From sequence record NC_047995.1: DNA of 64,000 bases. One strand, given 5' to 3'. The notes under the pieces were generated by a model, which saw only the letters and a program-made list of their open reading frames with translations, was not told where the DNA came from and made no database searches. Numbering within the stretch: the first letter of the stretch is position 1; the number at the start of each line of letters is the position of its first letter. Positions 1,496 to 22,725 of the stretch are shown here, piece after piece. A program made the position numbers and the translations under genes.

Positions 1496-2524
1496 TTATT
1501 CCTCCAATACACCACTAATCTCCGCAAACATATTTTTGTACACTAAACTACCATCGAGCATGTCCAGCCTGGCTGCCTGTACATAGAGCTTGGGTGTCGT
1601 GCGCATGTTAGCCCACGTCTTCTCGTTCGGGTCAAGGCCGCCCAACATCGGGACGATGACCATGCTAAGGTTGTGGTTAGCACGAACGAAACCAATGTCC
1701 ATGTGTTTCCTGTTTATGGTTCTGATTAGCTTGTTGATTGCGTCCAAACCAACTGGCTTATTGAATTCCGTATCATTGACAGTGTTGACCAGACTAACGA
1801 GAACTCCCTTATCTAAACCGGAGATCTCAAACAGATCCGACTTGAGATCAGCCTGAGTTGTTGCCGAGAAGTACGACACGTCATGGCCAAGATCTTTCAA
1901 GCAGGAGCCGAGAGCGCGTGCCGACTCGATGTGCGCTATGTTGTCATCACGAATAATGTACATAGGTGCATCGGGCTGGTACGTGCGTTTCGTTACCATG
2001 TCGATAAGCTCGCAAGAAGGACGGCCGACAGTGGCCAGCCCTTTGTTTGCGATGAAGAACTTATCTTTGTACTGCGCGTATATGTTCGGAGGCATATACT
2101 TCATGTAGTCATCGTCCAGGCTAAGTATCATTCGAGGCTTAGTGATCTGGACGACGAGTTGCATGGTACGCAGTGAAGCCTTGTACTCTGTATCAGAGAG
2201 CACACGGCTTATTGGTAGGTACTGCACTACAACGAACCGCTCGTCAATCGAATCGACTACAGAGCGAATCAACGTACTACCCAACGTAGGACCTGCCGAG
2301 AACTGAGTAACGATCATCACGCCGTCTTGCACGAGACTTTTCGTTGAGGCTACTGTTGCACCTCTTCCCCACTGTTGTGTAGAGGATTCCCAAGTTATGG
2401 CTGGTCGTTCGTCTCCGCTATCGGCATATACATGAGCTGTGCTACCCCAGAGACAGGCTCCAAGAAGGTAAGCAAGAGCACGTTTTCTGGATCGGCCTCG
2501 GCAGGATTGACCGTTTCGGGCCAT
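1496..2524 (-). CDS. Secreted protein with probable type I periplasmic-binding-protein fold (ABC substrate-binding/sensor-like, 342 aa)
   Basis: GAGGAG 7 nt before ATG; signal-peptide-like RKRALAYLLGACLWGSTAHVYA; alternating beta/alpha pattern with KPRMILSLDDDY resembling the KPD-x-I-x-x-x-DDNA motif. Confidence 0.55.
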   Translation of the reverse strand: MARNGQSCRGRSRKRALAYLLGACLWGSTAHVYADSGDERPAITWESSTQQWGRGATVASTKSLVQDGVMIVTQFSAGPTLGSTLIRSVVDSIDERFVVVQYLPISRVLSDTEYKASLRTMQLVVQITKPRMILSLDDDYMKYMPPNIYAQYKDKFFIANKGLATVGRPSCELIDMVTKRTYQPDAPMYIIRDDNIAHIESARALGSCLKDLGHDVSYFSATTQADLKSDLFEISGLDKGVLVSLVNTVNDTEFNKPVGLDAINKLIRTINRKHMDIGFVRANHNLSMVIVPMLGGLDPNEKTWANMRTTPKLYVQAARLDMLDGSLVYKNMFAEISGVLEE

Positions 2525-3222
2525 AGCACTTCTCCTCTCTCGTCAGTGACGTAAGGAATGCCTGCGCCTTTACCCAATCCATGACGTAAGGCCCACACTG
2601 TATCGGCATTCTCCTGCACGAACACTAACCCTTTGACTTGCGCTTCGTCTGTCGCAGTCTCTAACACCTCAACGCGCTTCTCAAGAAGCTCGGCATCAGA
2701 TTGCAGCACACGAATAGCAGACAGGTTAGAGTTAACACGCTGGTTCATGTTGTTGAACATGGTGAAGAACGAGTTGTTCATCGCCGTGCGAACGCCGTCC
2801 GTATAGGACTTAGGAATTAGTTCATCGTTGTCAAAGACGGTTACGCCTGTGCGAGCGAGAACTTTACCGGTAAGACGTCCACCACTTGCGCTAATGATTT
2901 GAGGAGCAGGTAAATCTGACTCGTCCCAAATCTGAACAGTGGTCATCACCGTATTGTAATCAGTCTCTTCCTGCCACGTATTCTTATACGGAGCAGAAGC
3001 TGCTTTCGACTTACGACGCATGACTTTCTTATAGCCAGCGTTTGCGCCATCAGCGATAATCCAGAGACCGTTTAGTGGAAATACGTGAGTAATCGGTTCA
3101 GCAAACGAAAGAATGATCGTAACGTCTGCGCCTACCTTGTACGCAATATCGTTCGACGCTGACAGACCTTGCTGTTGGGCAAGATTAATCAACGTGTCCA
3201 CGTAGTTAGTCAACTGGCTCAT
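2395..3222 (-). CDS. Putative virion/fibre-associated protein with a short coiled coil (275 aa)
   Basis: Long ORF with GGAG RBS, downstream of fibre genes; coiled coil LQSDAELLEKRVEVLE. Confidence 0.6.
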   Translation of the reverse strand: MSQLTNYVDTLINLAQQQGLSASNDIAYKVGADVTIILSFAEPITHVFPLNGLWIIADGANAGYKKVMRRKSKAASAPYKNTWQEETDYNTVMTTVQIWDESDLPAPQIISASGGRLTGKVLARTGVTVFDNDELIPKSYTDGVRTAMNNSFFTMFNNMNQRVNSNLSAIRVLQSDAELLEKRVEVLETATDEAQVKGLVFVQENADTVWALRHGLGKGAGIPYVTDERGEVLWPETVNPAEADPENVLLLTFLEPVSGVAQLMYMPIAETNDQP

Positions 3223-3684: not shown

Positions 3685-4506
3685 TTAGTCTCCTACTGCC
3701 GTGTACCAGAAGTCCCAGCCGACAGTGTTAGTGCCGCTAGACTTAATGGTAAAGCCACCTAACAAGGCGTTCTCGTTCATCGCACTGGTGCCGTCCAAGT
3801 TATACAGCGTGAAAGTCTTGGACTGGTTCGTTGCTGCGTTCACAAACGTAATGTGAAGGCTGATACAACGGTTGATGAACGGGCTATTGAAGATAACGTG
3901 CAGCGTGTCAGTTGTCGATTTGTTCACGACTCGACCCATGTTGTGGGTGAAGCCTGTGTTCATATTTCGATTGCTACCAATCCACGCGTTCGCAATAGGT
4001 GCACCAGTTACTGGGTCGAGTGCTTGCGCTGTGCGATATTCATCAATCGCTGCGTCACGCCCTGGACTACCAGTAGGGCCAGTTGCTCCAGTAGGACCGA
4101 CTGAGCCTGTGTTACCTGTAGCACCTACAGGACCTGTGTTACCAGTAGGCCCATTACGACCACGGGGGCCGCGAGGACCGGGACAGCCATCAGTGCCGTC
4201 ACGACCATCGCGTCCGTTAGTACCAGAGAGACCGCGTAAGCCGTCTTTACCCTGTTTCCCTTCACGACCAGACTTGAGCTGATCAGCAGTAGGCAAACCA
4301 ATTACGTTTGACTGACTGCCGTCTGGCCAGATGATTGAAAGTGTACCTGTATTGGTATCGAACTGAGCACCCTGAGCACCTGGAATCTTCGCGGCTTCTT
4401 GCGGGTCAATGAACGCAACAGCCGTGGACGTCTTCTTACCCAGCACTTTACCTACAGGGTCTTTACCACCGTCGATAAGTGATGGGCTAATTCTTGTAAG
4501 AGACAT
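3685..4506 (-). CDS. Collagen-like fibre protein D (273 aa, 24 Gly-X-Y triplets)
   Basis: Uninterrupted GRE..GCP..GRD triplets, preceded by FDTNTGTL..GLPT; globular C-terminal domain. Confidence 0.85.
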   Translation of the reverse strand: MSLTRISPSLIDGGKDPVGKVLGKKTSTAVAFIDPQEAAKIPGAQGAQFDTNTGTLSIIWPDGSQSNVIGLPTADQLKSGREGKQGKDGLRGLSGTNGRDGRDGTDGCPGPRGPRGRNGPTGNTGPVGATGNTGSVGPTGATGPTGSPGRDAAIDEYRTAQALDPVTGAPIANAWIGSNRNMNTGFTHNMGRVVNKSTTDTLHVIFNSPFINRCISLHITFVNAATNQSKTFTLYNLDGTSAMNENALLGGFTIKSSGTNTVGWDFWYTAVGD

Positions 4507-4516
4507 GGGTGAACTC

Positions 4517-4720
4517 CTAACCAGTCAGTGTTGTCCAATCAGGTTGGCCCGATTGTCCGGCTTCGGGATTTTTGACTTTCGTGTTATTGATAGTCATACG
4601 AATCCAACGGACCGTTCCGTCCGTATCTTGCCACCGAACCTTCGTCCCACCGTATGCTAAATTAGCTACCCATCTGTCTCTGCTCGGGTCTTTGAATGCT
4701 AAACGTGCATATGCAGGCAT
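4517..4720 (-). CDS. Small virion protein resembling the N-terminus of 7648..9666 (67 aa)
   Basis: GGAG RBS, fills the gap exactly; RWIRMTINNTKVKNP resembles DWTPLTPEKFSVRNQ. Confidence 0.7.
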   Translation of the reverse strand: MPAYARLAFKDPSRDRWVANLAYGGTKVRWQDTDGTVRWIRMTINNTKVKNPEAGQSGQPDWTTLTG

Positions 4721-4729
4721 ACGCTCTCC

Positions 4730-7606
4730 TTATTCGATTTCACTCGGTTCCCAACATAGAATAGGACGGCGCCACACCTGGAACACACCGATAGGGTTCG
4801 AACGGAAGTCATCAATGTAAGCATCGAAAGTACGTCCGCCACTGTTGCCGCTAGCCATGAGTGTCTGCAAGTTAGACAGCCAAGAAGCACGTCCACCAGA
4901 GTCAGCTTCAAACAATCCTTCCCACACCATGTCGAATGCGCCGCGCCACGCGTTGAAGTGATGAGAAGAATATGCACCATCACCAACTGAACACAGCACC
5001 ATGTACTGGTAGTCTTTCACGCACGGAATCATGTAGTCATTCCCACGTGGGATAGCAGTGCCGTTATTGTTGAAGATACACTCCCAACCAGTACGGTCTG
5101 CGGCGCCTGTCGTCAAGAACAGGGGACGACGAATGATCATCATAATTCCGTTCGCCCAGCCGTCATTGCTTGACTTCTCGCAATACGCATTGCAGCGTAA
5201 CGCACGGTCAACGGTAAACGTGGTAGAGTTTGAGAAGTCACGGCTGTAGAAGTTCGAACCCCACTTAGGAAGATACTCTGCTGGTGGTACGAAGAAGTGA
5301 CGTTCAGCCAATTCAACTTCACCATAAGCATCATACGCAAACACGATGTACTCGAAGCCTGCTTCAATCTGAATGTTATGACCCTGTGAGCCATAGCCAC
5401 TCCACTTCCATACAACCTGCCAATCGTTTGTATCTCGCTCAGGCATTTCCGTGATGAGCTGATATGGGCGCTCGTACACATGCCACACTTTCCCTTCTTC
5501 TGTCGTGTTGATGTACAGAGAGTTAGGGTCATTGATGTTACCGTTAGACGTACCGCAGTAGACTTTGTGTGACGCACCAGCAGAGTTATAGATAGTCCCT
5601 GAGCCTATACCTGCGAACATATCCCAGTTCATCATCAGGTGCGATGTACACATTTCGTTCTGGCCTGCACCATCAGATGTTGAGAGCAGATACTCATTCA
5701 AGTCTTTGAACGCATAGCGAACGTAGTTACTGCCTGCACGGTTAACACGGTGAACCCAGTCGTGCGATTGAACTTTCGGCACAGGGAAGCATGGGTTAGT
5801 GACAGACACGACGAAGTTTTTAGTTTCATACATCGGCAGTTTCTTGAAGCGGTTATCACGAATCGTTACCGTGTGCTTCATGCCGTAGGTCTTACCGCCG
5901 TCCATACCGCCTAACACTTTGTAGTACGACTCATGCGCACTCTTGGTGTTGTCGAACAGTCCAGTGATGCCCATAGCAAGTGTGCCGTCACGATCTGTAC
6001 CTGTGCAGTAAGGCACGTTGCCTGAATCGAAGTCGAAGCCTACAGAGTAGTAGCTGTCAGGCGAACTTGATTTAGGGCCCCAGTAGAGTTCAGTGTAGGC
6101 AGAACCTTCACCGATACCTGGCTCACCGAATACGCAGTACGCAGCACGGTAGACATACTGGCTGCCCTGGAACACACGACGTGAAGCACCGATGCGATAC
6201 ATAGCAGCAGGCAGTCCGCCCTGCACACGGTTAACGTCCGCAGTATCATACGACACAACGAAGACGTAACAGTCGGTTCCAATCGAGTTGAGGAACGCAG
6301 CACATGCGGCAGCATTGGCAACACCTGGGTTAGTACCTTCGGCAGATGCGTGAATGTCAAACGCTCGGCGCTCAAGAAGTGCAAGATCAGACTTACGAAT
6401 CTTATAGACATTTAGGCCACGAGAGTCGTTGTACTGTACACCGTTATATATCGTGTAGCCGTGATCGCCTGTGTCAAGATAGCGCTGATAGCCAACGACA
6501 TGCGAGAACAGTCTGCTACGTGCCTGCAACGCTTGGCCATTCTGATTCGACCAACTGACAGACACATCACCAGCAGCAAGACGCGCTGCCCAGTCATCAG
6601 GCTTGTAGGGGAACGTGGTCACATCGAAGTTAACACCGTACGCCGAACCAGGTTCTACGCAGCATGGATTGCGATAAATAACAGGCGGGTCAACCACAAT
6701 ATCATCAGGGATATCGACCTGTCCGCAATACATCTGCTTCCATGTACCAGGCTGGCCACCTAGCGAAGAAGGTCCTGCAGGAGCTGCACCAGTGAACTGA
6801 TAGATAGCAGACAGACGATAGTTAATCTGGTTGTGCAGCTGAGGCACGTTCGTCCACGAAATGTGATTGCCGAACGAGTTAACGGCCTTAGCGCGAGCAG
6901 CAGAGGTAGAGACAACGTATGCCTGACCGTTACTGCGAATACCTAACGGGTTGAAGATGGCGTTGAAGTTCACGTTCCCTTCATACGCGTTCTTTTGAAT
7001 CACGATAAGACTGACGCCGTTGCGATGCGCTTCACGTAAAGCCGTGAGCATCTGCGTAGGCATACTTTGGTTCGTCGCAGACAGCAGCAGCATTACGCAA
7101 CTAAACTGTTTGAAGTAGCGGTAGTCACCATTGTAGCCGTATGCACCTGCGTTAATCTCCTGCCAGCTATGTGCGAACATGTCCAGAGGCATGCGCTGCA
7201 TATAACCGACAAGCTGTCCCCACGACTCCATCGCACTATCATCATTGACAGGAGCAAGGTCGGAGATGACAAGCATCGAACTGCCGTTCGTAATGTTTGC
7301 GTTATAGCCCCGCTGAGTCAGGAAGTGACGCAACGCACCCATGTTGTTAACGCTCTTATTGCGGAAGTTCCCTAACCAGCCATAGTTAGCATCGACGAGA
7401 GGGCTACCCTCACGAACGAAACGACCATTCATGTAGATAGCGCCAAAGCCACACACGTAAGCGAGAGAGTGGCCATCTACAACAAACGAGGTGAAGCGTG
7501 ACGCATCGACTGCCATAGCATCGACAGCAGACTCGGAACCATTGCCAGGGCTACCGCTGAACACAGGAGTAATGCCTCGTGCGTACAGGCAACTTTGTTG
7601 CAGCAT
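4730..7606 (-). CDS. Large multidomain fibre/adhesin protein with an ILEI/PANDER-like domain (958 aa)
   Basis: RGLNVYKI..FDIH..AAFLNSIG..VFVVSYD..RIGAS..YRAAYCVFGEPGIGEG follows the ILEI pattern; three C-terminal repeats. Confidence 0.7.
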   Translation of the reverse strand: MLQQSCLYARGITPVFSGSPGNGSESAVDAMAVDASRFTSFVVDGHSLAYVCGFGAIYMNGRFVREGSPLVDANYGWLGNFRNKSVNNMGALRHFLTQRGYNANITNGSSMLVISDLAPVNDDSAMESWGQLVGYMQRMPLDMFAHSWQEINAGAYGYNGDYRYFKQFSCVMLLLSATNQSMPTQMLTALREAHRNGVSLIVIQKNAYEGNVNFNAIFNPLGIRSNGQAYVVSTSAARAKAVNSFGNHISWTNVPQLHNQINYRLSAIYQFTGAAPAGPSSLGGQPGTWKQMYCGQVDIPDDIVVDPPVIYRNPCCVEPGSAYGVNFDVTTFPYKPDDWAARLAAGDVSVSWSNQNGQALQARSRLFSHVVGYQRYLDTGDHGYTIYNGVQYNDSRGLNVYKIRKSDLALLERRAFDIHASAEGTNPGVANAAACAAFLNSIGTDCYVFVVSYDTADVNRVQGGLPAAMYRIGASRRVFQGSQYVYRAAYCVFGEPGIGEGSAYTELYWGPKSSSPDSYYSVGFDFDSGNVPYCTGTDRDGTLAMGITGLFDNTKSAHESYYKVLGGMDGGKTYGMKHTVTIRDNRFKKLPMYETKNFVVSVTNPCFPVPKVQSHDWVHRVNRAGSNYVRYAFKDLNEYLLSTSDGAGQNEMCTSHLMMNWDMFAGIGSGTIYNSAGASHKVYCGTSNGNINDPNSLYINTTEEGKVWHVYERPYQLITEMPERDTNDWQVVWKWSGYGSQGHNIQIEAGFEYIVFAYDAYGEVELAERHFFVPPAEYLPKWGSNFYSRDFSNSTTFTVDRALRCNAYCEKSSNDGWANGIMMIIRRPLFLTTGAADRTGWECIFNNNGTAIPRGNDYMIPCVKDYQYMVLCSVGDGAYSSHHFNAWRGAFDMVWEGLFEADSGGRASWLSNLQTLMASGNSGGRTFDAYIDDFRSNPIGVFQVWRRPILCWEPSEIE

Positions 7607-7624
7607 GTTATGTCCTTAGATCGA

Positions 7625-7646
7625 GAAGAGGGGCCGAAGCCCCTTC
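7625..7646 (-). terminator. UUCG-loop hairpin (weak terminator or stabilising hairpin)
   Basis: AGGGGC-TTCG-GCCCCT on the minus strand just after the 7648 stop; poor U-tract. Confidence 0.5.
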
Positions 7647-7647
7647 T

Positions 7648-9666
7648 TTATTCAAATACCACGTTGGTGATTGCGATGTAGTCCATGTTGATGCCGTCAC
7701 CTCTATCCCATCCAGAACTAACATACAACCAAATCTCTTCACCGATCGCTACGTTAACAGGGATGGTGAATGTTTGAATCGAAGTGTTGTTCAGTGGGTG
7801 GAAGACAGCTCCTGGATTAGAACGCTCATACCAATCAAGGCCGCTATGCCAAGAACCCTGTCTACCTGAATAGCGAATATCAACAGTGATCTGAGTGATA
7901 CGACGCGTGAAGAAGTTGTTCCACTTGAACCAACCTTTCGAGCCGCCCCAGAGTACACCGTAGTCACCATCAGGAGAACGCACTTGCGACCAGAAGTCAC
8001 CGAAGCCACGGCCACCAGTATGCTCAATCTGATAGCAGTACCAAGGGAAGCTGTCAGCAACAGGCGGCTGCGCGTTATCGCCTTCAATCGTCACACAACG
8101 ATAAGGAACGGTGAAGTCACTCACGTTGATATGTGGCGGTTGAATCGGGCAGTACACATAGTACGACCAATCACATCCGATAGGCGCCGTCACTCGCACT
8201 GTGATGTTAGAGCGCAGCACATGCTCAGGGTATTTCCAAAATTCCAGTGTGCCAGTACGACCTGCAACAACGATTGACGTATCAAGCAGGTTCATGTTCT
8301 GGTCGAACACTTCGAACTTGGTATCAAAGGAGTTCGCTACGCAAACAATAAGCTCGGCGCGAATATCCGTTTGAGTTCCTAAGGCAAAATTATCTTCTGT
8401 TGTTGGGTGACCGGCAGAGTAGACGCTATAACTCTGACAAGGGTGCATGTATTCACGCGCACCACGTTCGCCAGGGCAATACAGGCTGTAGAAGCAACTC
8501 GCCAGTGATGCAGCATTACCGAAGTCTTTACTGACTACGCGCACCATGATATCACACGCGACGTTTTGCGGGTCGAAGTAGAAGTACAGGTAACCTTCGC
8601 CCGTCTTCGCGTCCAACGTTGTCGCAATGCGTCGGCCTGACTGATACACCTCGATGAAGTCAAACGTTTCCCATGAGGTATAGTCGAGATACATCCAGCC
8701 CGCAGTCCAACCAACGAAGTGATAGTATTCGAAGGCTGAGGAGTTCTGAATGCGCTCGGTAATAGGCCAGACAGTAGCGTGACACGGTGCAGGGAAGATT
8801 GGGCTACCGATGTAATCAGGATGAATAACGTCAGGGAAGTTGATAACGTCATATGCAGCCTGGCTGTCGAGAGCCAACCCACCACGGTCAGACGGTGCAG
8901 CAAGACGAGGCGGATAGACTTCTAAGCTCCAGCCGTAACCCTGTGTTGTACGCACACGTACCATGATACGCATGTCAGCAGCGTCAGGGTCGAACTGGAA
9001 TTTGATACGTGACCGACCAACTACTTTACCGCACGTCGAAGCAACACGCACACCCATGTGATACACGTCAACGCTCGCACCAGCAGGAGCATACGACGCA
9101 ATCATCAGCTCAACGTAGCCCTCAATAGCAGGCATTGCATAGATTGTTTCTGTGACTGTAGCACCGCGGCCATGTACTGAGGCATACGGAACGTTAGGGT
9201 TAGCGTATGTGCCAAGCCCTGAACGCGAGGCCACGCCGACAGGGTCGTAGGTCTCAATAGTTTTAATACCAGGGCGATTGATAGATCTGCCAGTAGGTGG
9301 AGCAAATGAGTTAATAAGGCCGAACCCAGTGCGCCCAGCATCAGGCAAATCAAACCCAGCAGGATAGCCTTTAAGAATATCATATTTCTCTCTGCCACCG
9401 GAGCCGATACCGTTGCCAGAGCCTTTGGTTGTCGATGTAGGACCGCCACCACACGCACCTGTTTCGAGGTTCGAACAAGGGTCATCGTAAGTGGGATCGA
9501 ACGAGTCATCAATTAGATGCCAGCGCTGACCCCACTGATTACGAACGCTGAACTTCTCAGGAGTAAGAGGAGTCCAGTCACCTTCTTGTGTGCGTATGAA
9601 CATAGGCGTGTCAACACAATCGTGCCAACCGTTATTCGCAGCATTACGAACGCGAAAACGTGCCAC
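7648..9666 (-). CDS. Virion fibre-associated protein with three tandem beta-sandwich repeats (672 aa)
   Basis: Three repeats of about 90-110 aa containing VDVY/IEVY/FEVF and ending MVRV/MVRV/TVRV; in the fibre cluster. Confidence 0.65.
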   Translation of the reverse strand: MARFRVRNAANNGWHDCVDTPMFIRTQEGDWTPLTPEKFSVRNQWGQRWHLIDDSFDPTYDDPCSNLETGACGGGPTSTTKGSGNGIGSGGREKYDILKGYPAGFDLPDAGRTGFGLINSFAPPTGRSINRPGIKTIETYDPVGVASRSGLGTYANPNVPYASVHGRGATVTETIYAMPAIEGYVELMIASYAPAGASVDVYHMGVRVASTCGKVVGRSRIKFQFDPDAADMRIMVRVRTTQGYGWSLEVYPPRLAAPSDRGGLALDSQAAYDVINFPDVIHPDYIGSPIFPAPCHATVWPITERIQNSSAFEYYHFVGWTAGWMYLDYTSWETFDFIEVYQSGRRIATTLDAKTGEGYLYFYFDPQNVACDIMVRVVSKDFGNAASLASCFYSLYCPGERGAREYMHPCQSYSVYSAGHPTTEDNFALGTQTDIRAELIVCVANSFDTKFEVFDQNMNLLDTSIVVAGRTGTLEFWKYPEHVLRSNITVRVTAPIGCDWSYYVYCPIQPPHINVSDFTVPYRCVTIEGDNAQPPVADSFPWYCYQIEHTGGRGFGDFWSQVRSPDGDYGVLWGGSKGWFKWNNFFTRRITQITVDIRYSGRQGSWHSGLDWYERSNPGAVFHPLNNTSIQTFTIPVNVAIGEEIWLYVSSGWDRGDGINMDYIAITNVVFE

Positions 9667-9675
9667 ATGTTCTCC

Positions 9676-10167
9676 TTATGGGCGAACCCAGATAGCACCA
9701 GCAGCAATTTCCTGATCGATAGCAGGATCGGTGTCTTGTACAAACACCATCACTGTACCGGGATTGCCGGGAGCACCAGTAGGACCAATAGGACCCGTCG
9801 GGCCCGCAGGACCGCGATTACCCACGTAGCCTTGCTTACCCTGATTGCCGTCAGTACCACGAGGACCCGGGCAACCATCAGTACCACGACGACCATCACC
9901 GCCCATCAGACCATCAAGACCATCACGACCTGAAGGACCTACGCCACCAGCAGGACCGTAGCCGATACTGTGAATCGTAGGCAGCCCTGAGATCTGGAGT
10001 TTACCGAAGGTGGGAATGTTGATAGCAAGCACACCAGTCTGCTGGTCGAATGAACCGTTAAGAGTGCTGTCATCTTCTGTCGTATCGACGACTAAGCCGC
10101 CTTGGGTAGCTAGTACAGGACCAGATGCGTTGGTCTTGACTAGCGCAATATCAACTTTTTCTACCAT
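9676..10167 (-). CDS. Collagen-like fibre protein C (163 aa, about 22 Gly-X-Y triplets)
   Basis: Gly-X-Y run; FDQQTGVL..GLPT motif; C-terminal GAIWVRP. Confidence 0.85.
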   Translation of the reverse strand: MVEKVDIALVKTNASGPVLATQGGLVVDTTEDDSTLNGSFDQQTGVLAINIPTFGKLQISGLPTIHSIGYGPAGGVGPSGRDGLDGLMGGDGRRGTDGCPGPRGTDGNQGKQGYVGNRGPAGPTGPIGPTGAPGNPGTVMVFVQDTDPAIDQEIAAGAIWVRP

Positions 10168-10176
10168 GATTACTCC

Positions 10177-10809
10177 TTACGGCCAGGTAGTGCCTTGATC
10201 TTTAGTAGGGTCAACCCAGATTGTACCAGCAGCAACAGCGCCAGGCTGAGTAGCACTAACGATGATAGACAGACGACCAGCAGGACCAGCAGCACCTGTT
10301 GCACCAGTAGGGCCTGTAGCTCCAGTCTTGCCTGTAGGGCCTGTGCCGCCACGAGGTCCAGTAGGGCCCGTAGGTCCCATAGGTCCAGTACGACCGTCAG
10401 GTCCAGTAGGTCCGACAGGGCCGGGTAGACCATCACGACCATCAGGTCCTGGGATACCTTGCTCACCATCGGGCCCTACGTTACCGTCACACCCAGGTTC
10501 ACCCGGATTCCCATCGCGACCATCACGTCCGTCTTTACCATCAGCGCCCGTCTCACCTCTGCCCCCTTGACGGCCTTCAGGGATATCAGAAGCAGTAGGG
10601 AAGCCATTCACTTTGACAGTCTGACCGTTAGCGAACTTGAGCGTCAAGATACCGCTAGTGGCATCGAACGAGGAGTCGCCTGTCAGCTCGGAAGGTACAT
10701 CAGCATCAGCAGGACTGACTGTAAGAGTTCCCTTAGAAGCACGAACAGCGGTCGGCGTAGAGGACGAGCCTGCTTGAATGAGGCCGGTACTTACTTTAAT
10801 CAGACTCAT
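10177..10809 (-). CDS. Collagen-like fibre protein B (210 aa, about 34 Gly-X-Y triplets)
   Basis: Gly-X-Y run; [12 protein letters not shown] motif; C-terminal GTIWVDP. Confidence 0.85.
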
Positions 10810-12251
10810 TACTTTTTCTCCGCTTTTGCAACGATATCCGTGTTATGCACAAGCACATCTCCGACGAAGTAGCAGTCGAATGGGTCAACGTCAATATCGA
10901 CCGTCTGCACATTATCGTCAACGCGGCGCATCTCGTAGACAGAGACAGGACCGTTGCGGCCTAGAACAGTTTGACCAGCTTGTACATCACGCGCAGGAAC
11001 ATAGCGCCACGCAGTATCGTCGTAAATCAAAACAGGGTGTTCGTGCGTGAACTTCTGTCCGTTGATAACATAGAAGTGGTCCTCTTGACCGCGAACCAAC
11101 GCTTTAACAGTTGCGTACACAGTTGTGCCTTTGAGGCTAGGCGAAGACCAACGTCTGAACTCTTTAGGCTGATTCGAATAGCCAAGAATAGCATCGCCAA
11201 CGCGAAGTTCTTCTACAGTCTTCGGACCAACGAGAGTCTCAACAACGGAACCAAACACGATACAGCCAGATGTTGCAGTGTTGACAGGGTTACGCGCAAC
11301 GACAGTCAACGCAGAACGCGCTGTAGCTGTAGGACGCGATGTTTGTCCCATGTCAGTTACGACGCAGGTGATGGTGCCTTTGATAATACGATCAGCACCA
11401 AGACCAAGCCGCAGGTAGAAGTTAACAATGCAGGTGTTTGTCTCTGTAGCTTCGAGAGTTACACCTTCTGTGGTAGTGACTGTCCATTTATACTTATATG
11501 GACCGACACCGCCACGCGCATTGACAGGTAGATATGCCAGTGACGTAAACACATCAGAGCCTTGCACTGTACGTTGACCTACCAGGTACAGACTCGACAC
11601 TGACGCAGCAAGAGGTGATATTGTAGGAAGCGGTGGTGCTGGCGTAACGTTCGTCGTAGGGTATAACCACACGAACACTTTACTATCCAGAGGTTGAACA
11701 GACGATAGCACTGCTGTAGTGATTGGCGCTGGGCCGGTTGCACCCGTAGCACCTGCGATACAGCTTGGACCGTCATTGCCCCGCGGGCCGATTGGACCTG
11801 TAGGGCCTGTATTACCGTCAGGGCCTGTAGGACCATCGGGTCCCATACGACCCGTATCGCCGTCAGGACCATCTTCGCCGTCTCGGCCAGGGTCTCCGAC
11901 AGGACCTGTCTTACCTCTGTTACCCACACCGCCAGGACAACCAACGCGACCAGTTTCTCCATCACGACCGTTTCGCCCGTCACGACCAGGAGAGCCTGGA
12001 GCGCCTCGACGCCCAGACTTACCTTCACCGAACATGGAAACAGTCGGAAGCCCAGGGACGTTTAGCACCTCCCCGTTCTTCTTGATGAAAACCAATACAC
12101 CTGTCTTGCTGTTAAATCTTACGCTGGCGAGCTGTGTCAGTGTTGCCACATCAGAGGCTTCGAATTTAACACCTCCGTCAACTCCGACTAAGGATTTACC
12201 TTCATCGTTCTGCGTTGTTTCGACTTGCGAAAGTTTTAACAGTGTTGTCAT
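10809..12251 (-). CDS. Collagen-like fibre protein A with a C-terminal Hint (intein-like) domain (480 aa)
   Basis: 29 Gly-X-Y triplets, an interruption, then 3 more; a beta-rich domain; then a Hint domain. Confidence 0.85.
10842..11264 (-). other. Hint autoprocessing domain (141 aa, no endonuclease)
   Basis: Block A CIVFGSVV (Cys1), block B THEHP (TxxH), block [14 protein letters not shown], terminal VHN followed by Thr+1. Confidence 0.85.
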
Positions 12252-14587
12252 TTCGGTTCAACCTTAATGCACAAGTTACCAGTCAGCTTCGAACCGTAGC
12301 TAGTGATCTGCGAATCGGTGATACGCACCTTAGCAACGATATCAATGAAGCCTTGTGGTTGGTTCTCTTTCAGCACCGTGAACATCTGCGTCAGGCTTAC
12401 GTTAGAGTACGCAATTACTTCTGTCAGACTAGCATCGGAAGTAACAACGTTGAACCCTGCGCTGCCTGTGCCTTTCAGTCCACGCCCGTATTCAGCTTCT
12501 GCTGTACCCGGCATCTTGAACGAGAGCACGTACTCGATGTGTTCCTTACCGCTGGTGGCCGCGAAGCCTGGACCCAGTTGACACTGGAAGTCAGCGATAC
12601 AGGTCAGCATCACACCCTTAGAGAAGTCTATACGTTGAACGATGGTCAGTTCTTCCGAATCTGTGACATTCTGTTGGATGTTGTACATGTTCTTCGGGTC
12701 AGCTTCTTCGGCGAGTGCCTGTGTGTTGCTGATCGTAATCTCAGGCCAAGTGCCTTTAATCACAATACCTTCACCCTGAATGATAGCAGGAGCAGCAATA
12801 GGCACGTCAATCGGAGGCAGACCTTGACGCTTGAACATGTAACCTGTTGGCGTAGGGATAGCGTCGATGATAACACCATCAACTGAACTATCTTTTGAGC
12901 CGACTGCCATGACGTTCTCGAAGATGGTTACTTCAATGAGTGTGTCTGCAGGAATAGGCGACGTTGTTTTTAACGAGTTACCAGCCACTGTGAAGTCAAG
13001 CGGGTGTACAGTCAGACCGCCCATCGCCATAACGCAGTGCGCTTTATTTAGTGGCGTAGTAGGCAGAATAAATGTATCAGCATCATAAGGCAGGCGATAC
13101 TGAGCAACACGAATACGAGTAGACCAGTTGGCTCGTTCTTCATAGCGGGCCACATAGAATGAATACTTCTGACCAGATGGAATTGCTTCGGTCAGCGTTA
13201 CCTTGTTACCTGCATTCAGCTTATAGACCGTAGTAGGCTGCCAAGTTGAACCGACGACGCAGAAGATCATGTCCACGCTATCAATCGGTTTGCTGCCTAA
13301 GCTGAACGTTGCTGTCTGTCCATCGCCAGTGCCTTCGTAGACTTCAAACAACACAACGTGGCCTTGAGAAGGCTCAACGCGGAACTGCCTGAGGTCAAGC
13401 GATAGACGCTGTTCAGGGAACGACGAGAGCAGGAGCTGATCATCCACAACGCTGTATGCAGTACGAGGCTGCAAGACACCAGACGTGCCGACTAACAGAT
13501 CAGTCGAGCTATCAAGAATCTCGGACAGCGCATAGCGCATCTTATCAGGCGTCGCAGTTGTCACGACAGAACTAAACAGCATCTTGCCCGGAGGCACGAA
13601 CAACGAGGCTGTAGTCTGGCGCGCTGAGCCGCCAACAGGTGCCCAGTAAGGCTTAGCGTCTTTGCCTCGCATCAGCGCCCATGTATCAGGCACATCGTTC
13701 TGATCGGGCCAAGGCAGACCAGCAGTCGGAGTCGTCGGGTTAGTGATTCGACGCCATACTGCAATCGTAGTCTGCGCTGAGATGAACGGGATAGGTCCAT
13801 CTTGGTTGACAAGTTGACCGCCAACGAATTTGAAGTGACGACACGCACCAGCGCCAGTACCAGCAATCGTCTGAATCAGCACAACCTCATTCGCTTTCAA
13901 CGTACCCGCGAGGCTGGCGATCTTAAACGTGTTGGCGTTGATGAATCCAGCAGTCGTAATCTGGCCGCTGAACAAACGGTCATGCTCGCTGAATGCCCAG
14001 TAATATGAGCCAGCGCCATAACGATACGCAACGCCAGGAGACTTGGAACCATCAGAGTTAACGTGCATATCAAGAACCGATACGGCGTTGAACACGTTGT
14101 CTTTCAGGCTCGGTAAGTTCTCAAGCGTAGCCACACTCGGGATAGAGGTGTAGTCTGCCATTTTAACAGCAAGAATCTTTTGAATGTCCTGCTGGATATG
14201 TACGAGCAAGCTCACGCGATTGATAGAGTTCGGTACAGCGATGATAGGCTCTTCAAGGACAACGTGACCGAAAGGTCTGTTATCAGAGAGCATGATCAAC
14301 AGCTCACCCACACGCTTCATCTGTTCGCCAGCGACGTAGTTGATTTTGATATCGAATACAAATCGGGCACTGTTCTCGGTAAGTACCTGAACGTATGACA
14401 GGGCGCCCGACGCAAGCTCGTTGCCAAGTAACTGCTCTGGAACCACTGATGGGTTTGAGCCTACAAAGTCACCTGCTTTAAACGACACTGGTTGAACTGC
14501 AAGTCCACCAGAGTTAGCGTTCGCAACGGCCTGTTCTCCCTGAGGCGTTAGACGCAATGCGTCAACGTAGATAGATTCAGTGGCCAT
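12248..14587 (-). CDS. Tail-collar/fibre-attachment baseplate protein (about 779 aa)
   Basis: N-terminus LRLTPQGEQAVANA..FKAGD..VGEL resembles phage tail-collar fibre N-terminal domains; ATG at 14587 with AAGGAG RBS. Confidence 0.6.
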   Translation of the reverse strand: MATESIYVDALRLTPQGEQAVANANSGGLAVQPVSFKAGDFVGSNPSVVPEQLLGNELASGALSYVQVLTENSARFVFDIKINYVAGEQMKRVGELLIMLSDNRPFGHVVLEEPIIAVPNSINRVSLLVHIQQDIQKILAVKMADYTSIPSVATLENLPSLKDNVFNAVSVLDMHVNSDGSKSPGVAYRYGAGSYYWAFSEHDRLFSGQITTAGFINANTFKIASLAGTLKANEVVLIQTIAGTGAGACRHFKFVGGQLVNQDGPIPFISAQTTIAVWRRITNPTTPTAGLPWPDQNDVPDTWALMRGKDAKPYWAPVGGSARQTTASLFVPPGKMLFSSVVTTATPDKMRYALSEILDSSTDLLVGTSGVLQPRTAYSVVDDQLLLSSFPEQRLSLDLRQFRVEPSQGHVVLFEVYEGTGDGQTATFSLGSKPIDSVDMIFCVVGSTWQPTTVYKLNAGNKVTLTEAIPSGQKYSFYVARYEERANWSTRIRVAQYRLPYDADTFILPTTPLNKAHCVMAMGGLTVHPLDFTVAGNSLKTTSPIPADTLIEVTIFENVMAVGSKDSSVDGVIIDAIPTPTGYMFKRQGLPPIDVPIAAPAIIQGEGIVIKGTWPEITISNTQALAEEADPKNMYNIQQNVTDSEELTIVQRIDFSKGVMLTCIADFQCQLGPGFAATSGKEHIEYVLSFKMPGTAEAEYGRGLKGTGSAGFNVVTSDASLTEVIAYSNVSLTQMFTVLKENQPQGFIDIVAKVRITDSQITSYGSKLTGNLCIKVEPK

Positions 14588-14616
14588 CAAAGAACTCCTT
14601 GGGTTTTAACTGTTCT

Positions 14617-21382: not shown

Positions 21383-21405
21383 GATTATTCTCCTCTGTTA
21401 GACAC

Positions 21406-21413
21406 AAATTAGC
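21406..21413 (-). promoter_or_regulatory. Putative late promoter GCTAATTT
   Basis: Between a terminator and the PAAR gene, 24 nt before its ATG. Confidence 0.65.
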
Positions 21414-21431
21414 TTGTTACGAGACAGAAAC

Positions 21432-21457
21432 AAAAACGGGCAGCCTAATGGCCACCC
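21432..21457 (-). terminator. Intrinsic terminator closing the long non-coding region
   Basis: GGGTGGCC-ATTA-GGCTGCCC followed by GTTTTT on the minus strand. Confidence 0.8.
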
Positions 21458-21493
21458 AGTTTCTGTACGCTTGGATTTTGTGTCGTCATTCCC

Positions 21494-21652
21494 TTACGCC
21501 CGATGCAAGTGCCTATCAGCTTTCGCTGTTAAGCCGGAATGAGTGTTCGAGAGTGAAGGTACACCTGGTACCGACAGAAGGTGACTCTCGGACCATGCAA
21601 GCAATAGACCAAGCATCGCTATTGCAAGCATCGACACTAAGAACAAAAGCAT
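21494..21652 (-). CDS. Putative 52-aa hydrophobic small protein inside the candidate RNA
   Basis: AAGGAG 7 nt before ATG; MLLFLVSMLAIAMLGLLLAW (20 hydrophobic residues), then a polar tail ending ..RHLHRA*. Confidence 0.45.
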   Translation of the reverse strand: MLLFLVSMLAIAMLGLLLAWSESHLLSVPGVPSLSNTHSGLTAKADRHLHRA

Positions 21653-21711
21653 GTTTCGCTCCTTGTGTCATACTTTAAAGGACTACGTTTGATCGACGGT
21701 TACTTTATTCT

Positions 21712-21740
21712 GCTCGTCGCCTAAACTCCACTTGAGTATC
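21712..21740 (-). repeat. Copy 2 of the motif GATACTCAAGTG-N6/7-GGCGACGAGC
   Basis: 22 identical nt shared with 22106-22133; enclosed by an ATTCTG/CAGAAT stem. Confidence 0.85.
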
Positions 21741-22105
21741 AGAATGTTTCTCTGTCTTTACCGCCTACGTTGCGGCAAGCCGCGCACGACACTCACACAT
21801 CAAGGACACTCGGCGGAAGGAGGAAGTTCCGATTGCCCTAACAGCGTAAGTGAAGCGAAGGAGGTCCCGTATCGGTGATCTGCAGGGGTTCACGCACTTT
21901 TAACATTCGCTTCTTTGTGCGTTAAACCTTCGTGGACCCGAATGCCCTGCTAATCATTCCACGAAGATATTGCACACCCTATTGTGAACGAGGGGGTCGA
22001 GCTATGGCATCACGTCAACAGCAGTGGACGGCGGACACACTCCATTGCAATCTGTTAAGGGCAGAATGCAACAGGCTGTGAACAGCTTTGGCCAAATGTA
22101 GAGTC

Positions 22106-22133
22106 GCTCGTCGCCCAACATCACTTGAGTATC
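22106..22133 (-). repeat. Copy 1 of the motif GATACTCAAGTG-N6/7-GGCGACGAGC
   Basis: 22 identical nt shared with 21712-21740; enclosed by an AATGTAGA/TCTACATT stem. Confidence 0.85.
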
Positions 22134-22725
22134 TCGTCTACATTCGTTTACTCCCTGAAAGCATCACTAGGCAGCTTACCTGTGATACCCATGAGGACCT
22201 GCGGATGTTTATCACTCTCAGACTCTTAGTTCCCTGCATGTGAAAACAACACGTTGAGTCGTCCGCTGGATGACGTGCTGTTTATTCTCAATCCGCTTAG
22301 GCAGCGAAAGGCACATATCAGATAATGATGGAACTGTCATGAAGGAATCCCTGGAGGTCATCGCTTCCCAATGCACACAGGGTGAAAGCCTATGCACATC
22401 AGGCAGCGTCTGCTGCGATACTGCTATCCCTATTAGACTGCCCACAGCGTTGAGTTTTCCGCTCCAACAGTCTACGTGCCTGGAAGGTATATGCCGTGCC
22501 AAGTATGTATCAGCATGGTTCCTGCTGGGCCTTGAGAGCGTCAGCGACAGAGCATATATTCATCACGTGGGTGCCGGGGTTGTCCTCACGATTACAGAGC
22601 GCAAACTCAAACCGGCTGGAGGCCTACACAAACCGCATGTAGGTTTCACATCAAGAGAAGCCCGCTATGAGTCCTCTCCCTTGAGACATATTGATATTAC
22701 TATCTGCAATTTTTATTTACAGATT

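Follow-up and report, generated by a model that had tools for sequence, protein, structure and literature searches.

Four genes for collagen-like chains lie in a 64,000-nucleotide (nt) stretch of sequence record NC_047995.1 (the window, in which position 1 is the first letter), which is identical to part of the 266.5 kb genome of the Erwinia jumbo phage vB_EamM_Alexandra (window position = record position minus 62000), a jumbo myovirus. The four open reading frames (ORFs), all on the minus strand, are gp106, gp110, gp111 and gp112, and we refer to their products as chains A, B, C and D. They are found within a baseplate/tail-fibre module, flanked by baseplate wedge and PAAR genes on one hand and by other fibre genes on the other, and tail-fibre families of PHROGs match them with E-values down to 1e-36. 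The parts of each chain are listed in Table 1.

A motif script recovered in all four chains the features that the initial annotation had described: an N-terminal domain of about 70 residues with the motifs F[DN]xx[TS]GxL and G[LF]PT, a 6-residue linker, a Gly-X-Y region, and a Cys at the X position of triplet 10 (hereafter Cys10; GCP, GCP, GCD and GCP in A, B, C and D). The unbroken Gly-X-Y runs comprise 24, 23, 34 and 29 triplets in A to D, with 3 more after a break in D; the earlier counts of 24, 34 and 29+3 were right, and the second chain has 23 triplets rather than 22. A VWLYP-like motif that had been assigned to chain A is located in the 10809-12251 gene, that of chain D, and IWV[RD]P, taken for a chain end, does occur as IWVDP in the gene at 10177 (chain C) but is followed there by 9 more residues. 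The Pfam Collagen family (PF01391) matches all four chains above its cut-off (34.7-55.3 bits versus 27.2). Charged residues make up 35-60% of the first 10 triplets as against 15-37% of the rest, which is richer in Pro and Thr, in agreement with the charged N-terminal halves noted before. Predicted rod lengths are 20-29 nm (about 20, 20 and 29 nm), and the two adjacent Cys at the helix end that make up a type III collagen-style cystine knot occur in none of the chains.

The paralogues are 22-29% identical in their N-terminal domains and 11-28% at the X/Y positions; because both values are low, the four chains are old duplicates. No Pfam or PDB family was found for the N-terminal domain, and its profile matches to repeat proteins (Calx-beta, KTSC-like hairpins) were read as generic beta-hairpin similarity. 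Three metagenomic sequences (P0060, P0078 and P0084) have a hairpin like the core of this domain (KTSC-like, 'collagen-flanked surface repeat') repeated between short collagen segments, and the N-terminal domain may derive from a hairpin repeat of this type.

Table 1 Features of the collagen chains and of gp113 in the window (aa, amino acids).
Feature	Position	Strand	Evidence or remark
Chain A, gp106, 273 aa	3685-4506	minus	ORF, motif script, Pfam
A, N-domain + linker	4270-4506	minus	
A, 24 Gly-X-Y triplets	4054-4269	minus	
A, all-beta tip domain	3688-4053	minus	weak Pfam Gp53-like_C match, E 0.025
A, Cys108, X of triplet 10	4183-4185	minus	present in 13/13 orthologues
Chain B, gp110, 163 aa	9676-10167	minus	ORF, motif script; no tip
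B, N-domain + linker	9958-10167	minus	
B, 23 triplets	9751-9957	minus	
B, 24-residue C-terminal peptide with invariant Trp	9679-9750	minus	
B, Cys99, X of triplet 10	9871-9873	minus	present in 52/53 genomes
Chain C, gp111, 210 aa	10177-10809	minus	ORF, motif script
C, N-domain + linker	10576-10809	minus	
C, 34 perfect triplets	10270-10575	minus	34 perfect in every genome
C, 30-residue C-terminal peptide	10180-10269	minus	
C, Cys107, X of triplet 10	10489-10491	minus	present in 54/54 genomes
Chain D, gp112, 480 aa	10809-12251	minus	ORF, motif script
D, N-domain + linker	12024-12251	minus	
D, 29 triplets, Cys in Gly position, 3 more triplets	11727-12023	minus	
D, neck	11640-11726	minus	
D, Ig-like (immunoglobulin-like) sandwich	about 11277-11639	minus	
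D, intein-like (Hint) domain, residues 330-470	10842-11264	minus	
D, conserved 10-residue tail	10812-10841	minus	
D, Cys105, X of triplet 10	11937-11939	minus	present in 49/54 genomes; absent only in JA11-like lineage
D, Cys164, in Gly position of triplet 30	11760-11762	minus	invariant in homologue alignment; all 54 D chains
gp113, 780 aa, fibre-module protein	12248-14590	minus	conserved; syntenic upstream of D in all relatives examined

The chains were compared over 53 distinct related genomes (54 in some counts), which fall into 24 clusters. The four-gene set is syntenic in Alexandravirus, Sasquatchvirus (Y3), Salmondvirus (JA11) and Yoloswagvirus, and also in the Pseudomonas phages PaBG, Lu11 and HRDY3, in phage NCTB and in many metagenomic contigs. 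When IMG/VR was scanned with profiles, the C alignment mostly drew unrelated collagen genes and the gp113 scan was specific. At every locus of the 53 genomes B, C and D each occur exactly once: B always has 23 triplets and C 34 perfect ones, and D has 29 and then a Cys in place of the triplet-30 Gly. The length of A is variable, with 24 or 25 triplets and 48-53 in some lineages. The B rod is followed in every genome by a tail of 21-26 residues, and across the clusters the tails of D and C range over 27-542 and 30-209 residues; the interchangeable tips proposed earlier are a fair description of D and C, whose tips differ between chains and lineages.

Cys10 is the best-conserved non-glycine column, being present in 0.96 of 52 chains (13 genomes x 4 chains), whereas the commonest residue of the neighbouring X/Y columns reaches only 0.15-0.63, a difference that rules out chance. 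The columns adjoining it are variable, and Cys10 is under strong selection of its own. The non-glycine columns that rank next are both in triplet 7, with Asp at Y (0.87) and Arg at X (0.62). True exceptions to Cys10 are the D chain of JA11-like phages (5 genomes) and one metagenomic B; the D chains of Lu11 and L016 were rejected as exceptions, being counting artefacts from one imperfect triplet. The four chains are true paralogues with a Cys register conserved in homologues. The initial annotation had listed a Cys position not shared by homologues among the findings that would speak against its proposal, and this finding was not made.

Chains C and D are of equal span: if the Cys-x-x break of D and its final triplets are included, each has 34 triplet positions before a homologous cap. 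A further Cys, at X of triplet 20 (Cys20), is shared by C and D in 14 genomes (10 of the 24 clusters), is missing from both in 40 of 54 genomes (14 clusters), and never occurs in one of them alone; it was never seen in A or B. Phage NCTB has Cys20 in neither C nor D, and its nearest relative, L123, has it in both. Because these sisters differ in C and D at once, Cys20 must have undergone more than one coordinated change.

Ion pairs of the Y-Gly-X type are recognised interchain clamps of collagen (PMC11923368). We scored opposite charges as +1 and like charges as -1 between Y of triplet n and X of triplet n+shift in another chain, and compared C and D of the same genome with permuted genome pairings over the 24 clusters. 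The charges of C and D co-varied at Y(n)-X(n) (z 6.6) and at Y(n)-X(n+1) (z 7.7), and the excess was spread across contacts from triplet 4 to triplet 29. No signal was detected between C and D at other shifts or for X-X and Y-Y, nor between B and C or B and D (|z| <1.8). The possibility that clade composition produced the co-variation was rejected because the signal survives permutation inside clades (z 5.7 at shift 0 and 6.0 at shift +1). Gene conversion was rejected likewise, the X/Y identity being 0.240 in cognate and 0.229 in non-cognate pairs. Between A and B, compared in 15 lineages, a weak co-variation was seen at shift +1 (z 2.9, p 0.002) and none at shift 0; many tests were run and it may be chance.

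Contacts within one kind of chain were scored in the same way. D-D contacts had no positive co-variation, the values being null or negative, and the score of a D homotrimer was zero or below, that is, net repulsive, in 15 of the 24 clusters. The mean net pair scores were -1.2 for D3, 10.4 for C2D and 9.1 for C3. C-C co-variation peaked at shift +2 (z 5.1), the index offset expected of a trailing-to-leading contact, and B-B contacts had the pattern at shifts 0 and +1 that is expected of a homotrimer. Because D-D is null or repulsive, the C-C peak lies at n+2 and B-B follows the homotrimer pattern, these data point to a C-D-C register; the co-variation between chains also lends indirect support to the formation of a triple helix. 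Imperfect triplets of the Gly-to-Ala type are present in D in 10 of the 24 clusters and never in C or B, which fits a minority chain buffered by two perfect chains.

Taken as a whole, the observations are best explained, with a probability that we put at roughly 0.55, if C and D form a C-D-C heterotrimer and A and B form homotrimers, all of them being paralogous collagen-stalked fibres of the baseplate/tail-fibre module. The initial annotation had proposed a heterotrimeric system; for C and D this is favoured by the comparative evidence, but a single system of all four chains is not, as A and B have no consistent co-variation with C or D. The N-terminal beta domain and the fixed linker would select the chains, set the register and anchor the fibre. 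The charged proximal third would then clamp the helix through interchain ion pairs, and a Pro/Thr-rich distal rod of fixed length would lead to a short Trp-containing cap. A and B would wind as homotrimers, while C and D would share one triple helix, most likely with two C and one D and with D as the middle chain. A would carry a trimeric beta-sandwich tip, likely a binding head. D bears one Ig-like domain and, beyond it, an intein-like domain expected to release itself by cleavage, whereas no tip is present on B or C. The fuller claim, that this is a natural C-D-C heterotrimeric collagen with composition and register set by charge pairs, Cys staples 10 triplets apart and a single intein-matured asymmetric tip, the first known outside animals, seems to us an even bet.

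Cys10 would act as an interchain disulfide staple that forms once the virions leave the reducing cytoplasm, its oxidation being possible only after lysis, and in some lineages Cys20 of C and D would be a second staple. By our own estimate for a one-residue-staggered helix, in which the distances are borderline for a disulfide, only D in the C-D-C register is near both neighbours at the same triplet number, and therefore any staple would join D to C. Cys20 would be needed in both genes for the same reason. Ten triplets correspond to about one turn of the relaxed collagen superhelix, so that Cys10 and Cys20 may share a face, a placement that would suit links from rod to rod equally well. If D is the single chain of the heterotrimer, its Cys164 would be left without a partner in the helix. 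Lu11-like D chains have two extra Cys near triplet 30 (28Y and 32Y).

Several points weigh against this interpretation. The proteins are known here from sequence alone, and the pair model is crude, as it uses charges only, takes its contact geometry from general knowledge and treats related genomes without an explicit phylogenetic model. The score of C3 is close to that of C2D (9.1 versus 10.4), and C homotrimers may also form. JA11-like phages have a D without Cys10 while their C keeps it, and one metagenomic B is also without it, so pairing with a partner Cys is not the sole constraint. The X-to-X C-alpha distance between neighbouring chains, about 7 Å by a rough estimate of our own, is only just compatible with a disulfide. 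Contig L016 has the intein-like domain on C and not on D, which fits worse with one processed tip per trimer. The strength of the ribosome-binding site, considered as a clue to a 2:1 ratio of C to D, did not differ across 24 lineages, and the AlphaFold2 (AF2) models are of monomers and uninformative on the helix.

One alternative, which we consider possible though clearly the less probable, is that all four chains are homotrimeric and that the odd Cys links neighbouring rods, or a rod to a baseplate protein, as in adiponectin and C1q. Equal-length C3 and D3 rods lying side by side in register would then account for the shared second Cys and the charge complementarity. X side chains point outward and rod-rod links are sterically easy; the Cys is equidistant from the homologous N-terminal domains in all four chains, as it would be if they sat at one level of a bundle or socket; C retains Cys10 where D has lost it, and C3 is predicted to be stable. 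However, the repulsion within D3 and the lack of D-D co-variation do not agree with a D homotrimer, lateral packing would not predict a C-D signal limited to Y-X contacts at shifts 0 and +1 without X-X or Y-Y counterparts, and both the C-C peak at n+2 and the tolerance of D for imperfect triplets never seen in C tell against it.

It is rather unlikely that the Cys is no disulfide partner at all and that it forms, with the Arg-Asp of triplet 7, a docking site on the stalk for a common partner such as a baseplate socket, an assembly factor or a metal, as in collectins and C1q. The two triplet-7 positions do rank next to the Cys in conservation, and assembly takes place in the reducing cytoplasm. 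Docking would nevertheless leave unexplained why a second Cys exactly 10 triplets on is gained or lost jointly in C and D, and no partner was identified.

The notion of tail 'hairs' built from heterotrimers in which the four chains combine freely has the homologous N-terminal domains, the common register of the first 10 triplets and the 'hairy' name of the group in its favour, but is very improbable given helix lengths that differ and are separately fixed (23, 34 and 24-53 triplets), an A length that varies independently, the null result for B/C and B/D, and rods well below the 119 nm measured for hairs in the unrelated phage CBB (PMC5259590). For hairy Myoviridae the hair proteins are unknown and tail-fibre genes have been named as candidates (PMC6143709); the position of the genes in the baseplate module favours baseplate fibres over hairs. 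The virion proteome of PaBG gives 14 strong bands, none of them named collagen-like, and uses a gene numbering of its own that is not mappable to the collagen chains.

The tips were examined with AF2 models and profile searches. The model of A is poor (pLDDT, the predicted local distance difference test score, 47.8), and a fold search of the PDB with it returned only weak beta-sandwich matches. A C1q-like head on A is not supported: with this poor model as the query, nothing in the PDB matched at E<=1e-3 and none of the top matches was a C1q entry; no Pfam match to the BclA_C head domain was found in any of the four chains. In D the Ig-like sandwich was modelled with pLDDT 80-90 and the Hint domain with about 90. 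The latter matched 2lwy both in Foldseek (template modelling score 0.80, E 2.5e-8) and as a PDB profile (E 1.1e-8), and it lies below the Pfam cut-offs for PT-HINT (21.9 versus 27.7) and Hint_2 (21.3 versus 28.4). Its catalytic residues Cys330, Thr402, His405, His469 and Asn470 (Cys1, T-x-x-H, His-Asn) are each at least 90% conserved in 25 homologues. The terminal Asn is followed by Thr here; some lineages have Thr or Ser at this position, others Ala, Met or Glu, and because of this variation cleavage is likelier than true splicing. Of the 24 clusters, 12 have the intein-like domain on D, 1 has it on C and 11 lack it, and JA11-type D chains stop exactly where it would start. NCTB and L123 have extra Hint ORFs in the fibre module.

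Among known systems, C1q and the designed charge-pair heterotrimers appear to be the closest working analogues. C1q and adiponectin share with the present chains the side-by-side genes for paralogous chains and the short stalks, and, as predicted here, one heterotrimer of fixed register and interchain links from one Cys per chain near the start of the stalk. They differ in that their Cys precedes the helix and ours is inside it, at X of triplet 10; in addition, no gC1q head was detected here, the chain-selecting domain would be N-terminal, and the host of these genes is a virus of bacteria in which no hydroxyproline machinery was seen. Designed AAB and ABC heterotrimers (e.g., PDB 6q3p and 9llp) combine opposite Y/X charges with homotrimer repulsion, the same logic as in C and D, but they are synthetic 30-residue peptides, whereas the natural chains have about 100 residues between flanking domains.

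In the streptococcal Scl1 and Scl2 and other collagen-like proteins of bacteria, a non-collagen domain at the N-terminus adjoins a charged, ion-paired Gly-X-Y region, as here, and the collagen part has sub-threshold NCBIfam similarity to bacterial collagen-like proteins. Scl-type proteins are homotrimers (PMC8968730). Unlike the chains of the window, they are cell-wall anchored, of variable length and without a conserved Cys inside the helix. BclA of the Bacillus exosporium nap also has a Pro/Thr-rich collagen region and forms short hair-like filaments, and its structure 1wck is a PDB match in the collagen part; however, the BclA C-terminal domain was not found in the four chains, and in BclA the C-terminal head nucleates a homotrimer. 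Among phage proteins, collagen-like tail fibres and minor tail proteins (PHROG 1806, 30509 and 8745) resemble the four chains in their Gly-X-Y stalks and variable distal parts. Bacterial intein-like (BIL) domains (PDB 2lwy and 6y75) have the fold, Cys1, T-x-x-H and terminal His-Asn in common with the C-terminal domain of D, whose copy differs in being fused to a phage fibre tip.

Collagen-like phage fibres are already known. Our literature search found no paper describing these collagen chains, and, as far as we found, there is no earlier description of four co-conserved paralogues of fixed length that have a Cys locked in register and a predicted mixed helix. Bacterial and phage collagen-like proteins are treated as homotrimers, and what determines chain composition and register in heterotrimeric collagens is an open question, for which synthetic peptides have been the main object of study. 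If the C-D-C heterotrimer is real, a natural system of about 100 residues would offer a compact model for heterotrimer composition, register and covalent stapling, all three readable from sequence across dozens of diverged genomes. For the fibre apparatus of 'hairy' jumbo phages, the proposal is the first concrete hypothesis of structure.

The minus-strand operon that contains the chains begins with PAAR, gp25-like and gp6-like baseplate genes; the gene for a 1511-aa tail protein and gp113 come next, and then the fibre genes. Along gp113-D-C-B-gp109 the stop and start codons overlap or are 9 nt apart: the gp113 stop overlaps the D start and the D stop overlaps the C start. The gp113 protein, translationally coupled to D, is a candidate attachment partner. 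Between B and A lie gp108 (958 aa, 4730-7606, minus strand), in which an ILEI domain (interleukin-like EMT inducer; EMT, epithelial-mesenchymal transition) scores exactly at the Pfam cut-off of 27.0 bits, and gp109 (672 aa, no family); the two may be cargo of the tipless B stalk.

Two records, L012 (PV550095.1, Alcaligenes phage Afa-NA1, 78 kb) and PV359490.1 (Salmonella phage Sen-NF, 108 kb), carry the jumbo-phage fibre module. They are labelled as mid-sized phages of unrelated hosts, yet their matches are identical at 49.4%, and both may derive from one Lupandier-group phage through partial or mixed assembly. At 21383-22725, between the PAAR gene and gp118, 1.3 kb are without a convincing ORF, tRNA or Rfam match; related phages have a gap at the corresponding position, and its sequence diverges faster than the genes. 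At the end of the fibre operon, the label 'HNH endonuclease' given to gp104 (2395-3222, minus strand) by RefSeq and PHROGs looks doubtful; its N-terminus resembles tail-protein PHROGs, and one related record names it a tail fibre protein.

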